Of a stretch of 64,000 bases of DNA, positions 35,701 through 56,182 are shown in pieces (position 1 is the stretch's first letter; each line of letters opens with the position of its first letter). The position numbers and the translations under genes were made by a program. The notes under the pieces are model-generated. The model made no database searches and was not told the origin of the DNA. It saw nothing but the letters and a program-made list of their open reading frames with translations. The DNA is from Zygnema circumcarinatum SAG 698-1b (Eukaryota; Plantae; Zygnematophyceae), in the NCBI GenBank assembly GCA_037447605.1, contig CM074818.1, positions 62,001 to 126,000 on the forward strand, in the 5' to 3' direction.

Positions 35701-39649
<3,949 letters not shown>

Positions 39650-46902: not shown

Positions 46903-47283
46903 ATCGAGCAGTGTGAGGCCGCCGGCCTCATCGACGGAGGGGCCGCGGCCGTCGAATGGATGGACGCAGCGGACGGCCGAGGACGCAGCGAGGCGGGGCG
47001 GGGCGGGGAGCCTGCATGGCTCGGCGGCGCGGTGGGCGAGGGAGGGAGGGCCGCCTGCATGGCACGGGCTGCTGCTGCTGCTGCTCGGGGAGGGGGAAGG
47101 CTGCAGCCGGCGGCCACAGCAGGGGCTATTGTACTTCCTGCAAGGCAGGTGAACGAGGGCGCATCGAGTGCATGAGAGTGGCTCCTCAGGTTCTGGCTTT
47201 AATAGCAACATGGCCTGCTCAAGGATGGAATTGGGGAACGAGAAGCGAGGGGGGCAGGGAGATTGGTAGATATGCTCTGTTGA

Positions 47284-50200
47284 ATGGTGAACATGAATTT
47301 TGGGAGAATTCGGTGTGGTAGAAATGGATTGGAAACTGGAGCTGAGCTGGATATGCTTTATGAAATACTCAGCTGCAGTAGCTTTTGTTTAGCGATGGAA
47401 AGAGCTGGATTCATAACACAAAGCTGGAATAGAGGTCTTTATAATAGGCCATGTCGAGAAGAAGGTTAAAACGATGATGATATCCGGTTCCACTGGAGCG
47501 AGAGCCTAGATATTATACTATCGATGTTGCATGGCTGTTTTAAATACTGGCACTACTTATTTTCATGATGTTCGGATCCTTGGATCTTTCCATTCTGCGT
47601 CAAGAAATTATTAAAGAGATTCGAACATGTATCGTGTGTTGACGCTTGTCTGCATCAGATTGGAACAATCATTCCATCATTGAAAAGTTTCTTGAGACTC
47701 GTCGTGGGACAAGACGCCTCGGACTGTTCTGCGTACATGCGTATATGCAGCAGCAGTTTTTGTCGAAACCTCACTTTCCATGTTGAATGCGCTGGCCGGG
47801 GACTGGTTGAAAATTTCACAGACTGACAATCTGATAAACATAAGATATTGTTCTGCCATCTGCCGTGGTGTTGCAGAGCTCGAATTAATGTCCATTGGAA
47901 TTGGTGGCGAAGCTCGTGTCATGGAGGGCATGACGAAGTCCTTTGTCGAGAATATGAACACGGCTGATGAAGTCCGAAGTTTAGGAAAACACGACCCCCT
48001 TCTTCAAGATGCATCTTCCCTTCATGCTCTGGATACAAGGGTGGATGCGACGCAGAGCGGTTCGTCAAAGCTGAAAACCGTCGAATGCGTGACCCTATTG
48101 ATGGGAGCCATCGATGGCACAGAGGAGAAAGGTTCCAACCAGCAGTGGCTGGTTGATGATGAAAAGGTGGGACAGGCAGCCGATATTGCCAAAACATTTG
48201 TTTCCACAATAGTAAGCTTTTATGGGCATATCCTTTCCATTCAATATTGACAATGGTTACGAATCTACGGTATCAAACATCCAAAGTCGATCAGACAATA
48301 CTCCTTTAGAACATGTTACCTTTGCCCTCCCCCCTGGCGTTTCATGTAGCCCATCATTTCAGTTTCTCACACTTCGCAACTTTTAGGAGATCGAGTTCTG
48401 TCCAGGTTATGGACGATGATGATTTTCCCAAGACTGCAATATGTCATTAGCCTTTTTTTAGCACAGACCGCAGGTGTTGCAACCGTTATGGCGAATGATT
48501 GTAACCTGTAAAGGCATGCTATAGGCGGCATACTTTTCTCCTTCCACGCGTTACAGTCATTCTCTTTGATTTAGCCAAACTGCAGTGCTGCTGTACCTGA
48601 ATTCGTTTTTGTTTATGCCATGATCTTGAAATCATCTTTTCGTATCGCAGCAGGGAAACAGCCGTGTACATTCAGGACAGTCGGAGCAAGAGCTGGCAGA
48701 CCTCCAAAGGGGTGCGCCCTCTGAAGGCGTAGAGGGCATGGAGCCCCTCCAAGAGGTCTTCAGGGCAGCATCGACCGATACAGCGCAGGACCTTTTCCGA
48801 CCGACTTTAGTGCAGAAGCGGAGGAGACTGGACAGGCACGCTACGCTGGATGAAGGCAACCCTCCATCGCTTACGCCGTGCAATTCCTCGACTGCTTGCT
48901 TTAGGAATAACGAATATCGAGGACATGCAGGAGGCAGATGCTCCTCCGAGGACGAAGAGACAGATGCAAATGGCAAGATGGGCACAGATGTGCTTCCATT
49001 ACACACGGAGAAACAGAGTGGATTGGATCCACGTGACGAATTGAAGAATGACAATAAACCCATCTTTGACAGCGAGAGCAACAACAAGAACGATGGTGTA
49101 CAGAAACGTATGAGCCTCTCTAAGATGGCTGAAGAAATCTGCGAGGCCGATGGATGGCCGCATGAGGCCACTGCCGAAGAGGCCGGAGCACTTCCTGCAC
49201 AAGCTTCTGAAAAACCGATCGAGACTGCTTTTGATGATCTCTGTCCGGCTTTGGACAATGGCGATGAAAAGCACTTGCTGCATGCTTCCATGCAAGAACT
49301 GGAGCCGCGGCTGAAGCAGCTTCAAGAGAATTTGGCGATGACCATTGGGGCTACTGAAGGTGGAAGTGACAGAAAGGCTTGCCTCCTCGAAGAGATACAA
49401 GCTGAAAGGGGTGATAAGGATGATGTAAATGCACAAAACTGCACTCAAAATGTCCCCTCTGTCAGCCACGCAGAAGCTTGGGCTGTTGAAAGCGGGGGTG
49501 GGAAAGGGAGCAAGCCACAAGCTGGTGTTACCACTGCACTATCAGAGCATCCTTCTCTGAATCCGGAGAGCTTACCTTTGTCTTGCGGGATCTCCTTTAC
49601 TCCTCTCCCATCACATGGGCTGGTCCATCAAGACCCTTCTGTAGGATGCTCCTTTGAATCCGGACCACTCTTGTCTTTTCCATTCTCGACGCCCCCGCAG
49701 AGATCCCAAGGAGGAAGTCAGCTCGGTAATTCGACAAGTACGAAGGAGACTACTTCAACTAAGGTCTCGAAGCCATTGTGCGGAGTTTTAGGCCAAAGGC
49801 GGAAAGTTCGTTTAATCAGTCACAGGGGAAGCTTAGGGGACGACCGCAAGGAGGGGCCACTGCCCCGCCAGGAAAGTCTTAAACGCACAAAGATCCCTTA
49901 TGAGCATGCGGTGGGTGACATCCTCTCATCACACATGCATACATACGAGCCGACTTAAAGCACATGCGCTTCTAACTTTTTTCGCATATGAATTCTTATT
50001 ACTGTTTGAACTTTTCAATCATCTTTTTTGTGTGCAGCAAATACTGCGGCGTTTCGCAGAAAATGCAAAGTGGGATTCCCACAGAATCGACACAAAGCAG
50101 GCAGCGGAGATATGTGTCGCAACTAAACTCAACATGCAGCAGCTCAAGAAATGGATGTCAAACCACCGGCCTAAGGTGAAATTCATGCCATTCTTCGCTT

Positions 50201-51911
50201 AATCTTTGAGAAGCAGCAGATAGATTGGTTTAGTTTCTTTATTTAAAAAAGGCAGGAACAACTGCGTACTTACTTCTAGCTGCTGGGACTTATCATCCTA
50301 TTATAGCTTACGTGTTCGAAACCATTCATACGCAGGATTCGATAGCCATGGATCACGCATTTCAGTCTTCATGGACTCCCAATACCTACTCCCTGCAGAA
50401 TGCGAGTTGGCCGATGATGGGTCCGCCATGCTCGCATGGAGAGGCCGACCTCCCAGCGACCAGCAGCCCAAGTCCCGATTCTCCTGAAAGGGTCGACGTT
50501 CAACCCCAATGGGTGAAGGGGCTCGCGGGCAGTTCTGGGCTGCCCTTTCAAGGAGAGGGAGGAGAAGGAGAGTGCGGACCGCAGTTCGCGAAAAAGGGAG
50601 GACCTCAAGATGGGCTGTTCGGGCAGGACGGGTCTGCCTTTGACGCATTCAGACAGGAGCAGACTGCGAGCCCTTGCCATGGCCTGCATCAGTCCGGGCA
50701 GTCAGTGGTGGACTGCGAGCTGATGAGCAGGGAAGGGTTGGACGGAAGTGTGGCTCGTTGTGGAGCAACAGCAATGTTTGAAAGTTCGGGGAAAGAGGGA
50801 GATGGTCGCTGTCTGCAATCAGCAGCTGCACCGGAGCCCTCCTTGGCGAGAGAAAAAGGGGGAGGTGGTGTCGAATATATCGACTCTCCCAACACTTCCG
50901 CTGTGGGACAAGAGCTCTCTGCTCCATCACTTAGGCGGCTTGACTGCCTCACCGTTAGCTGCGATTTCAGTCATTTTCCTCTTATTGGAAAGCACAAATG
51001 TAGCAGCAGATACATAGAAGTGCCTCCAGATAGGCCTGATGCAGTAAGTCTCCGCCTGAGACCTGGTCTGCCTGCCCCCTCGGGTCATGGAAGCTATGAA
51101 GTCGGCGGTGGGCTGTTCTGTGCGGATAGTGCGAGGCCGCCCTTTCAGCCGCCACACTTTCATGCCGGCCCCCACTACCATGTGATGGGCGAGCTGGGAG
51201 CACAGCCGAGCTTGCACTTGGGCATGGCCCCCTGCGAGTTCGGTCCCATGGCCATGGGGAGAGCAGACAATGGCCCCCCCTGCGCATGCGAAGATTTTTT
51301 GGCAGAGTCGGCAGGACTGCGGCTTGGCATTGGCAACTACTCGCAGTTTTTTGCTTCTTCTTGCGATGACGCTGAGTGGAACTTTGCTAACCACATGCAT
51401 TTCGTTCGACCGACGATTGGTGTGTACTCACAAGAGCAGGTCGGTCAGAAGGCGCTGCATTCTCAGTGCTCATCTGATGACCACCGTCAGCTGCAGCACG
51501 AGTGCAGGGAGGAAATGGGCTCCTTTCAGTCAGCAAGGGGAGGGTACTACTGCTGCGCCCCCCCCATGTACTCTCCGCAGGACTCCTGCATGGCCCCGTC
51601 CCGCACTTCTGACTTTACACAGCTGGTCGAAGAGTCGGAGAGTCCACAGCTCATGGTTCCCATGAACGACATTGTAAGCAGAAATTTTCCAAGCATGGCT
51701 GGAATAATGAACTCTACTTCAACGATAGGATTCCCCGGCCCAGATCATCCAGTGAATCCAAGCAGCTATGGCAACTTGATAAATAGAAAAACAGGAGAAC
51801 AAATTCTGGACTTCACGGACTACGGCCGAGATCCAAAAAGCACCTCGAAGAATGGAAGAGGACATGGCGCGCATACCACTTCGTGCCTGAACGTGGACGA
51901 TCGCTGCAGAG
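47284..51911 (+). CDS. Exons encoding an atypical homeodomain of the ZF-HD class within long low-complexity regions; probably the 5' part of a gene continuing into the B3 exons
   Basis: Spliced KRTKIPYEHA|QILRRFAENAKWDSHRIDTKQAAEICVATKLNMQQLKKWMSNHRPK aligns without gaps to the ZF-HD homeodomain pattern RTKF..EQ...M..FAE..GW.....D......FC...G.....LK.WMHNNK. Phase-compatible exons ~47284-47464, 47751-48211, ~48654-49910, 50038-50175, 50336-51911. Confidence 0.75.
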
Positions 51912-52131
51912 GTATGTCATCATGTGGGCCGGTCAACAGGCCCTCCACGGAGTGTAACCTTCTGAGGCGCATCCGACCACCCAGACATGCTGCTTCTCCT
52001 TGCTCTGTCTGTCTAGTTATGATTACTCAGCCTCGTTCCGTTTCTCTATTCTCTGTCCTATCTCAAAGCGAAGCAGAGGAGTAGGTAGTTGCAGTGCAGG
52101 CTGAGGCTGAGGCAGAGGCTGTCTCCCGCAG

Positions 52132-54804
52132 GGGGCGAAGCGCCCTCCCGTCGGCGCGCGCGCAGAGCGGCGCTGCTCGCGGCGCGCAGTGGGAGTGGGA
52201 GTGGGAGTGGAGGGGGAGGGCGGGCAGGGGGAGGAGGAGGAGAGGGAGGGCCGGCGGGGCGGCGGGCGCAGGCCGCGGCGCGGCCGTGGGCCAAACGGGA
52301 CGCGGGCTTCCTCCGCCGCGGGGCGCCCGTGAGCTCCGCCGCATTCACCCTCCTGTTGGGAGACAGGGACTGATCTTTCAGTCGTAGGTAGATATGGCAG
52401 GTTGAGGAGGAGGATAAAGCAAGGCAAGGGTGAAGGACCGGGGTAGGGGAGGGAGGGGAGGGGGAGGTTATGATCCATTTGAAGGCATTAAGCAACAGTT
52501 AATGGAATTAATGGCTTCTTGTAATGCCATGCTGTTGTGCCAAATCTGAGGCACTGATAAGCATTATTCCGTGACGAATGTGATGCTTTAACATGTTAGT
52601 AATGGACTGGATACACATTGGATGCGCTTTTCTTATGAGTGCAGAGCCCTATCGAGGGCGTCCTTTTCGAAAAGGCTTTGTCGAACACTGACACGAGCCA
52701 TCTCGGGCGCATCATCCTCCCTAAGGTGAGGGGCAATCCGGAGCACGTGGCTTATTTGGACGACGGGCAATTCCTTTTCTCGAAGACGAATGGTGGCAAG
52801 TTGGCCTCCCATTTTCCCCATTTGGGTGCATTGTCGAGAGCAGGGCCACAAAAGCATTACTCGCAGAGTGAAGAAACGTGACGAGCTCCAGTGTGAGAGA
52901 GAAGAGTAGGGCACTTCGTTTCCTCCTTTTTATCTCTGGCGGCGCTCATTCTGCTGCGCGGGGGGGCGCAGGCTCCGGCGGAGAAGTACCTCCCCCGGGT
53001 GGAGCGCGGCGAGGGCATTCCTCTCGTGGTGGAGGACGGCGGCGGCGGACAGTGGCGCTTCCGCTACAGGCACGCGCCTCGCGTGGGGGAGCGGGCGACG
53101 GGAGTGAGGGGAGAGACGAGCGACGAGAGGAAAGGAAGAGGAGAGAGGAGAGACGAGAGGAGGGTGGAGAGGAGGGAGAAGAGGAGAGCAAAAATGTGAG
53201 GAAGGAAAGAAAAGGTGAGACGAGAGCGGAGGATGACGGGGCACGGTGAGGTCGCTTTCAGCTGACGGGAACTGTCGCGGGCGGCGCAGGTATTGGCCGA
53301 ACAATCGGAGCCGCATGTACGTCCTCGAGCACGCCGGTGCGCCGCCCACGCCCCCCCTCCCCCTCCTCTCGTCCTCTCCTCCTCTCTTCTTTCTGTCGCA
53401 TGTTGATTGTCGCGTCGCGTCGCCGCCACCGCGCGGTCGCCCGGAGAGAGGAGAGGTCGCGCCGCGCCGGCCCGCCGTAGGCGTTGAATGGTCTGCCAGG
53501 GCGGGCACGTGCGGTTGTCGGCCGCGTCACTTGCTTTCATTGCTTTTTACTCGTTTCATTTTAAATTTGAACTTGCAAACGTGTAGTTCGAGCAGATCTA
53601 GCTGTAGGCACAGTCTCAGAGGGCATAATAATGTCGGAAGGAGTGGACACTAGTTGATGCATAGTGGTCGTTGCGGCGATTGCAGGTGATTTTATCAAGC
53701 ACCACAATCTGAAGGCAGGCGACTCGGTTGAGTTTTGCCGATCCGAGCTTGGCCATCTCGTGAGCCACTTGGCCCTCTTCATCTCTCCTTCCCTTGAATG
53801 GAAAAAACGATGCAGGAGGTACTGAGAATTCTTAGATTAAACATGCTTGTCTTCGTCGAATTTGAGCCACTTTTGCATACCATGTTTGTCATGCGGACAG
53901 GTCCTAAGAGGAAGGAAAGCGCATCATTCACCATTCACTCATGGAACAGCGCTTTCTACTGCCACTACTTCACTTTCTCTGGGAGAAGAAAGCTCGCTTC
54001 TGACATCCGCAGAAGCCTGCGGTACAAGCAAGTGCTTGTCCCCACCAGAAAGCCCACTACTGGGTGGGTCCATAAAGGAAGAACATAATATTTTTCCAAG
54101 TCAGTCGGTAGCTCCTATCGAGGAGCCAGCGGTAGGTGGCAGAGGTCGGCTAGAAGGCGACAGAGAGGACGATTCGCGAATGGGTTCCCAAGGCGCGTTG
54201 GAGGAGCTGGCCGTCATGCCATGTCGGCGGGAGGAGGGCCTCAGACGGGACAACGAGCTTTCCTTGAACGGTACATCTTTTCCGTTTCTGCGATTACTCC
54301 TGTTCCGCTTGTGAATCAGGTGCACTCTGTGACATGTGCCGGTCGCAGGAGTGCACTCGTACTGGTGGCAACTTGTCCCCAGAATGAACTTTGTCTTGTC
54401 GTCAAATCACTGCGGTAGTTCGGCTTGTTTCTAGTGGAAGACATGCTCAAAGTTCTGACATCGTCTCATCTTTTGGAGGGTCCATATTTAGCTTCGGTCA
54501 TGCTCCACTCTGTCTGAGCTACTTGTTTAACTGAAACCGTTGTGCTTTTGGCGTTAATCCAGCAGTTGCCGAACTTCCAGCGTATTCTCCGACGGTACTA
54601 GGTCCTTCCAGCGGCTACGACGACCGCGGCGAGGTGCGCACCTTTACTCAGTCTACTCAGTCTACTTAGGTTACTCTACCTGTGATTGGTCGTTTTTCTC
54701 GCCAGGCACCAAAACCCTCACATTGGCGTGGTCTGCAAAGCACTGCCCGCCGTCCTCACCGATGGACGACTTCCCGTTGTGGCAGGCGGAAAAGGCCTAA
54801 GTAG
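52132..54804 (+). CDS. LAV-family (FUS3/ABI3/LEC2-like) B3 DNA-binding domain exons; probably the 3' part of the homeodomain gene
   Basis: LFEKALSNTDTSHLGRIILPK|APAEKYLPRVERGEGIPLVVED...WRFRYR|YWPNNRSRMYVLEHAG|DFIKHHNLKAGD...HL|VLRGRK (exons 52645-52725, 52972-53069, 53290-53336, 53686-53759, 53901-). Terminal exons are less certain. Confidence 0.85.
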
Positions 54805-55059
54805 GCGAGCGGCGACCAAAGCTCGTTCGAATTTGCTACACCTTCCCTAAAGGCGAAGGAAAAGGCGACACTCCATGAGGACCTTAGGCTCTCGTGTCCA
54901 GAAGTAGCATGGAAGAGCGCGAGTTGCTCTTTTTGTTGCAGTTTTGTACAGGTTCAGGACCTCGAGCGTCTTGAGGGGGAGTGCGCTCTCGGCGTGGATG
55001 CTGAAGTAAAGCGGAGGGGGGCTAACAGATGCAATCAAAGTACACATACCGTCTGCAAT

Positions 55060-56001
<942 letters not shown>

Positions 56002-56182
56002 TGCGCGGGCACGCTGGAGCCGCCCTTTTTTGGCAACACACACTGGCAACAAATTTTGGCTGAGAACTCCAAACAGGCACGTTTGGTTATGGGCATGGGC
56101 TTGTAGAGAAAAGTAAGAAAGCACAGGGAATAGGCGGACATGCCGCGGTTGCTCAGCACAACCAGACTCCTGTGCACTGTCG

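Follow-up and report, generated by a model that had tools for sequence, protein, structure and literature searches.

At a locus of the alga Zygnema circumcarinatum SAG 698-1b, a gene encoding a homeodomain protein is followed directly downstream on the same strand by a gene encoding a B3 domain of the LAV class. The stretch of DNA that was analysed (the window) comprises 64,000 nucleotides (nt) of assembly GCA_037447605.1, contig CM074818.1, positions 62,001 to 126,000 of the forward strand; all coordinates below are window positions. The locus lies at approximately 47284–54904, with both genes on the plus strand. An initial annotation had joined them into a single gene for a protein of about 1500 amino acids (aa), combining a ZF-HD-class homeodomain with an AFL-type B3 domain. 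Our data lead us to favour, with a probability of roughly 0.6, two adjacent plus-strand transcription units, the B3 mRNA being transcribed independently and no obligate fusion gene being present. The start of the B3 mRNA would fall between 51877 and 52299, within a GC-rich island prone to form G-quadruplexes or a short way upstream of it. The leader exon of this mRNA lacks an AUG and is joined from alternative donors at 52328 and 52442 to the acceptor at 52645, and a spliced antisense RNA appears to extend leftward from the island over the 3′ half of the homeodomain gene. A complete B3 domain might be made from such a short mRNA if translation started at a near-cognate codon (CUGs at 52101–52173); otherwise, the AUG at 53315 would serve as the start.

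The evidence comes from RNA contigs of four runs (X1, X2, X7 and X8) placed on 49400–55300. These contigs carry no strand information, and Logan contigs lose rare variants. Run X1 is clean RNA, its depth falling to zero inside the B3 introns; X7 and X8 gave nothing at the locus beyond low-complexity cross-matches. Three predicted sense junctions of the homeodomain side, whose exons we call A to D (Table 1), fall within the covered interval: 49910>50038, 50175>50336 and 51911>52132. The last of these would create the fusion, and it was absent from the RNA contigs of all four runs. The RNA is colinear across the proposed fusion intron: X1 contig 2 and X2 contig 8 both continue without a break from 51876/7 onward, the former throughout 51877–52328. 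The two junctions flanking exon C were likewise seen in the contigs of none of the four runs. The body of the B3 mRNA is represented in X1 by a record of 1,009 nt (record 5) at a depth of 10.9, whereas depth inside the exon D stretch 51586–51876 is patchy and does not exceed 2.9. Since this stretch would be obligatory in any fusion mRNA, most of the B3 mRNA in X1 appears to start within 51877–52299, free of homeodomain exons. Further upstream, X1 contains just 0.22 of the words sampled from 47880–49400, the 5′ half of the homeodomain gene, yet it holds the whole B3 mRNA. With such a disparity in depth and no sense splice of the homeodomain gene, the claim that one mRNA encodes one homeodomain–B3 protein is unsupported.

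What RNA does cover the homeodomain gene is largely of the opposite polarity. The abundant RNA over its 3′ half can be assigned to the minus strand because its introns have CT..AC ends and because the sense introns are retained. Two antisense joints, 51584/5>51876/7 (a skip of 291 nt) and 49438>49576, occur in both X1 and X2; read on the minus strand, their splice sites are GTG/GTATGC...TGCAG/G and AAG/GTAAGC...TGCAG/T. The first of these introns (51586–51876) is mostly removed, and the second (49439–49575) is removed in part of the molecules. X1 contig 2 is colinear over 49576–51584, so that neither of the two sense introns predicted for the homeodomain gene has been removed from it. No sense RNA in X1 is as abundant as this antisense transcript, whose start seems to lie in the GC-rich island shared with the B3 leader. 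A minus-strand coding gene was considered as the source of the antisense contig and rejected, as no long or clean open reading frame (ORF) exists on that strand; the plus strand, by comparison, offers frames of 616 and 442 codons and a homeodomain that is matched better once its exons are joined.

The leader of the B3 mRNA occurs in two forms. Junction 52328>52645 has GT..AG ends and an X1 depth of 2.8, while junction 52442>52645 has a depth of 4.4 in the same run (record 4) and belongs to a contig that reads through the 52328 donor. In the 52442 isoform, in-frame stops immediately precede the B3 domain; in the 52328 isoform, the B3 frame is open back to 52089 and contains no ATG. A leader devoid of ATG, with stops ahead of B3 in the 52442 isoform, fits a 5′ leader. 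The scan for ATG found none in 52085–52328 or in the first two B3 exons, and the first AUG of both observed isoforms is Met 53315, inside B3. A start there would give a product of 189 aa deprived of two thirds of the domain. Four in-frame CUG codons (52101, 52107, 52119 and 52173) have a purine at −3. The stretch 52132–52328, which the initial annotation had taken for a linker exon, has a codon score of −1.5 in the proposed frame, against +15 ± 4 for coding pieces; it is a composition outlier with no coding signal in any frame. Its open frame is uninformative, given that all three frames are open at ~83% GC. By the same token, ab initio gene models in the Zygnema genome may join neighbours across GC-rich stretches that are open in all frames.

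Canonical G-quadruplex motifs lie on the sense strand of this region at 52191–52216, 52244–52266 and 52440–52464, the last exactly at donor 52442. These motifs could affect the choice of start codon or donor.

The sequence features from which the fusion had been assembled are all where the initial annotation placed them. An in-frame TGA (52636–38) precedes the B3 exon at 52645, which has no usable ATG; the donor CCC/GTGAGC at 52328/9 closes a frame that also lacks ATG and is bounded upstream by TAG 52086–88; the acceptor TCTCCCGCAG ends at 52131; and the phase-1 donor GAG/GTATGT lies at 51911/2. The prediction that B3 exon 1 is spliced to an upstream exon ending at 52328 was borne out by the corresponding junction in X1. 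Joining 51911>52132 and 52328>52645 yields one uninterrupted frame, which is 1,314 aa long up to the stop if counted from exon B.

These features bring us to the points that weigh against two separate units. In the B3-only mRNA, neither the part ahead of B3 nor the first two thirds of B3 contain an AUG. B3 exons 1 and 2 are intact, in frame and correctly spliced and retain the conserved LAV residues, an argument for their translation. The colinear stop of the homeodomain frame (52082) and the 52131 acceptor are just 50 nt apart, so that the two genes have next to no space between them. Donor 51911 is strong, is phase-compatible with 52132 and coincides with the end of the codon-usage signal of exon D: this signal falls after 51911, the tail 51911–52081 scoring +0.8 against +15 ± 4 for coding pieces. 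Because the B3-only mRNA offers no AUG before 53315, a complete B3 domain can be made only if translation starts at a codon other than AUG or if a rare fusion isoform exists.

The same points are the strength of the fusion as originally proposed, in which the homeodomain promoter would drive one protein of ~1,400–1,500 aa, its ZF-HD-like homeodomain lying N-terminally or centrally and its LAV B3 domain at the C-terminal end, the B3-only RNAs being non-productive or regulatory products of an internal promoter. Such a gene would supply the start that the B3 frame lacks unless it is joined upstream; the 51911 and 52131 sites are good and compatible in phase, the joined frame is open, and donor 52328 is demonstrably used in frame with B3. 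The codon-usage signal that stops at 51911 and the nearly nil space between the genes point the same way. We nonetheless regard the proposal as doubtful. Its key junction is seen in none of the four runs, and the RNA runs colinearly through its intron; B3 reaches a depth of 10.9 without a single sense homeodomain junction, with exon D at 2.9 or less. Moreover, the commoner leader isoform (52442) places stops before B3, and the would-be linker exon is of low complexity, open in all frames and free of coding signal. The pyrimidine tract of the 52131 acceptor is only 11 nt long, whereas the acceptors at 52017 and 52069, whose tracts are better, would give the homeodomain gene short tails.

It is also conceivable, albeit tentatively, that a fusion isoform exists in addition to the B3-only mRNA, namely a condition-specific 51911>52132...52328>52645 transcript encoding a single protein of ~1,400 aa with a ZF-HD-like homeodomain and a LAV B3 domain. 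In that case, the internal promoter and the antisense RNA from the GC-rich island might set how much of the locus reads as fusion. A rare or condition-specific isoform would escape the four runs, since sense homeodomain mRNA is undetectable in them. Other RNA-like runs, X5 and X16–X19, contain 0.67–0.74 of the sampled words of 47880–49400; as this is near the fraction of 0.68 expected from exons only, the homeodomain gene may be expressed there, which counts in favour of the fusion.

Returning to two transcription units, the missing AUG might be explained in three ways: near-cognate initiation in the leader, a rare or condition-specific fusion isoform, or a decaying gene. The last can be extended to a reading in which a former LAV B3 gene, or the former 3′ part of a longer gene, has lost its start codon; the whole B3 unit would be its decaying or non-coding remains and would yield only the truncated 189-aa product or a regulatory RNA. 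We hold this to be improbable. The position of the first AUG inside B3 in both isoforms would agree with it, as would the restriction of the junctions seen in X2 to the 3′ exons and the lack of homologues for the C-terminal 157 aa. On the other side, all six introns of the B3 unit keep working splice sites, and the four B3 exons show neither frameshift nor stop and preserve the LAV signature residues. An intact frame of 258 codons over six exons is unlikely to last long without selection.

The B3 domain itself is spread over four short exons (52645–53759) and amounts to ~103 aa once spliced. All six introns of the unit are seen in X1 contigs, with GT..AG ends except for GC..AG at 53070–53289. 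The last of the six corresponds to junction 54270>54566, and the 3′ end of the mRNA is close to 54904; an alternative intron in X2, 54634–54785 (junction 54633>54786), leads to a stop TAA at 54798–800. Against structures of the VAL1 B3 domain (6FAS, 5YZY and 6J9A), exon 2 matched VAL1 residues 30–60 with E-values of ~3e-4 (best 2.9e-4), and FUS3 followed at E=0.06. Exon 1 matched residues 11–32 of the LEC2 B3 domain (6J9C) at E=0.02 and VAL1 residues 8–28 at E=0.04, the LEC2 and VAL1 matches together spanning E=0.02–0.05. The two exons thus align colinearly, at successive positions of the domain. Exon 4 alone aligned with positions 68–84 of the Pfam B3 profile (PF02362) at E=0.17, the piece being too short to pass. 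Spliced exons 2 and 3 contain RYWPNNRSRMYVLE, and the N-arm GRIILPK is also present; W-P-N-N-x-S-R-M-Y in the DNA-contact loop is what we take to be the LAV signature. Judged by its sequence, the B3 is a genuine LAV-class (VAL1/LEC2/FUS3-like) domain. By analogy with its land-plant relatives, it would be expected to bind RY/Sph-type (CATGCA) elements.

The assignment to the LAV class thereby upholds one part of the AFL-type label given by the initial annotation. The narrower label is unfit for the algal domain because the best PDB match is VAL1 for exon 2 but LEC2 for exon 1, and because the origin of the AFL family has been placed in land plants or the land-plant ancestor (PMC5379062). Outside the B3 domain, the C-terminal exon and the leader/linker stretch gave no Pfam match, including none to the PHD-like and zf-CW modules that mark the VAL subfamily, and no ABI3 B1/B2 region was recognisable in the Pfam search. 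The C-terminal 157 aa of the B3 protein found no match in a database of 5.8 billion clusters.

In X2, the junctions of B3 exons 4–7 occur at a depth of 32–55, yet none of the four upstream B3 junctions was seen. Such a pattern suggests either an internal start in or near the GC/CT-rich intron 3 (53337–53760) or a long colinear RNA, antisense or nascent, across the B3 unit.

As for the upstream gene, its homeodomain is divided between two exons. The C-terminal residues of exon B, KRTKIPYEHA, correspond to the N-terminal arm and helix 1, and exon C retains W48, N51 and R53 (KKWMSNHR). Taken alone, exon C matched the Pfam profiles Homeobox_KN (E=8.8e-4) and Homeodomain (E=0.038), in both cases under the gathering score. 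Pfam scored the homeodomain at 20.8 bits with Homeobox_KN (cut-off 24) and at 14.6 bits with Homeodomain (cut-off 22.9). When the end of exon B was joined to exon C, the best PDB matches were the Arabidopsis ZF-HD homeodomains 1WH7 (E=0.0017) and 1WH5 (E=0.042), and 13 of the 13 PDB matches listed were homeodomains. The alignment with 1WH7 is ungapped over 53 residues, spanning the long loop between helices 1 and 2 and the WM.N motif of the recognition helix. With exons B and C spliced, the 1WH7 score is 21.5 bits instead of 16.6, in support of the intron between them (49910>50038). The correct bounds of the homeodomain exon are 50038–50175, and exon B ends at 49910.

The ZF-HD-class assignment also holds for the homeodomain and does not extend further. 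At E<=1, Pfam found no dimerisation zinc finger of ZF-HD proteins (PF04770) in exon A, in exon B or in the other plus-strand open frames of 47001–49910, and we accordingly limit the ZF-HD label to the homeodomain. The Pfam search of exon A gave no match. Exon D had no match among 1.84 billion representative proteins, nor any in Pfam or NCBIfam. Overall, these profile and structure matches indicate that the upstream gene carries a genuine but divergent homeodomain, ZF-HD-like, and the gene as predicted would be a large orphan (>1,000 aa) with this homeodomain as its sole recognisable module.

Table 1. Features of the homeodomain–B3 locus (window positions; a slash marks the exon–intron boundary).
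Feature	Position	Strand	Details
Putative early coding exon (exon A)	47888..48168	+	93 aa from ATG 47888; donor AAG/GTGGGA; predicted from open frame and splice motif only
Exon B, predicted	48654..49910	+	419 aa; within 442-codon open frame; phase-0 donor GCG/GTGGGT
Exon C, predicted	50038..50175	+	46 aa; homeodomain helices 2–3
Exon D, predicted	50336..51911	+	525 aa, orphan; within 616-codon open frame; phase-1 end at donor GAG/GTATGT
Spliced antisense RNA over 3′ half of homeodomain gene	49411..52328	-	X1 contig 2, 2,462 nt, depth 16.6; introns 51586–51876 and 49439–49575
Proposed fusion intron	51912..52131	+	Retained in RNA contigs; holds colinear stop TAG 52082–84 of homeodomain frame
GC-rich stretch, 3′ part of B3 leader exon	52132..52328	+	~83% GC, low-complexity, G-quadruplex-prone; linker exon proposed in the initial annotation
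Leader extension	52329..52442	+	Alternative donor GGG/GTAGGG; B3-frame stops 52371, 52389, 52431; 3-codon upstream ORF at 52394
B3 exon 1	52645..52725	+	27 aa, ...VLFEKALSNTDTSHLGRIILPK; acceptor GTGCAG/; junctions 52328/52442>52645 and 52725>52972 in RNA
B3 exon 2	52972..53069	+	APAEKYLPRVERGEGIPLVVEDGGGGQWRFRY; followed by GC-AG intron; junction 53069>53290 in X1
B3 exon 3	53290..53336	+	YWPNNRSRMYVLEHAG, LAV signature; first AUG of B3-only mRNA (53315); junction 53336>53686
B3 exon 4, domain end	53686..53759	+	DFIKHHNLKAGDSVEFCRSELGHL; junction 53759>53901 in X1 and X2
C-terminal exons and 3′ end	53901..54904	+	Exons 53901–54270 and 54566–54904; stop TAG 54667–69

Two further features of the window deserve a comment. 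Just past the end of the B3 mRNA lies a (CT)n/(GA)n microsatellite of ~1 kb with CCCT-type variants (55050–56090), at which the reads are cut. Elsewhere, a probable part of a DHFR-TS gene is found in the plus-strand ORF 35701–36282, which matched Pfam DHFR_1 (E=1e-25); of the ten long ORFs of the window that were scanned, it gave the sole other Pfam match.

Our results leave a remaining puzzle: the B3 unit is mostly expressed alone, and its B3 frame is intact, spliced and expressed without an AUG ahead of it. The locus is therefore a candidate for non-AUG initiation or for a promoter-dependent switch between a fused and a truncated product. A homeodomain–B3 fusion, if true, would bring together two DNA-binding domains in a new combination; we found no paper describing a homeobox–B3 architecture, although with incomplete coverage of the literature this is weak evidence of novelty.

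Finally, we would like to compare the locus with known plant regulators. The homeodomain shares with ZF-HD (PLINC) proteins its loop length and the WM.N motif, and 1WH7 and 1WH5 are its best structure matches. Unlike those proteins, the Zygnema protein has no zinc finger found by Pfam, is predicted to be very large and otherwise orphan, and has Pfam scores under the gathering cut-offs. RAV/TEM proteins (AP2 and B3) and ARFs are precedents for proteins in which B3 is combined with another module, DNA-binding or otherwise. RAV1 pairs its B3 with a second DNA-binding domain and reads bipartite sites. Should the fusion be true, the Zygnema protein would resemble RAV in pairing B3 with a second DNA-binding domain; it would differ in that the partner would be a homeodomain ~700 residues from B3, and a joint mRNA was not observed.

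The closest comparison is with the LAV B3 factors (VAL1/HSI2, ABI3, FUS3 and LEC2). The Zygnema exons are colinear with the B3 domains of VAL1, LEC2 and FUS3, with RYWPNNRSRMYVLE and GRIILPK shared, and the introns after LPK and after ...LEHAG presumably match positions in land-plant LAV genes. The Zygnema gene differs from LAV factors in that Pfam found in it neither the PHD-like, zf-CW and EAR modules of VAL nor the B1/B2 regions of ABI3; in that its mRNA has no AUG upstream of B3; and in an extra intron 5 codons before the domain. In land plants, LAV B3 factors such as ABI3 and VAL govern dormancy and phase transitions, and the state of the LAV class in streptophyte algae thus bears on the origin of these land-plant programmes.

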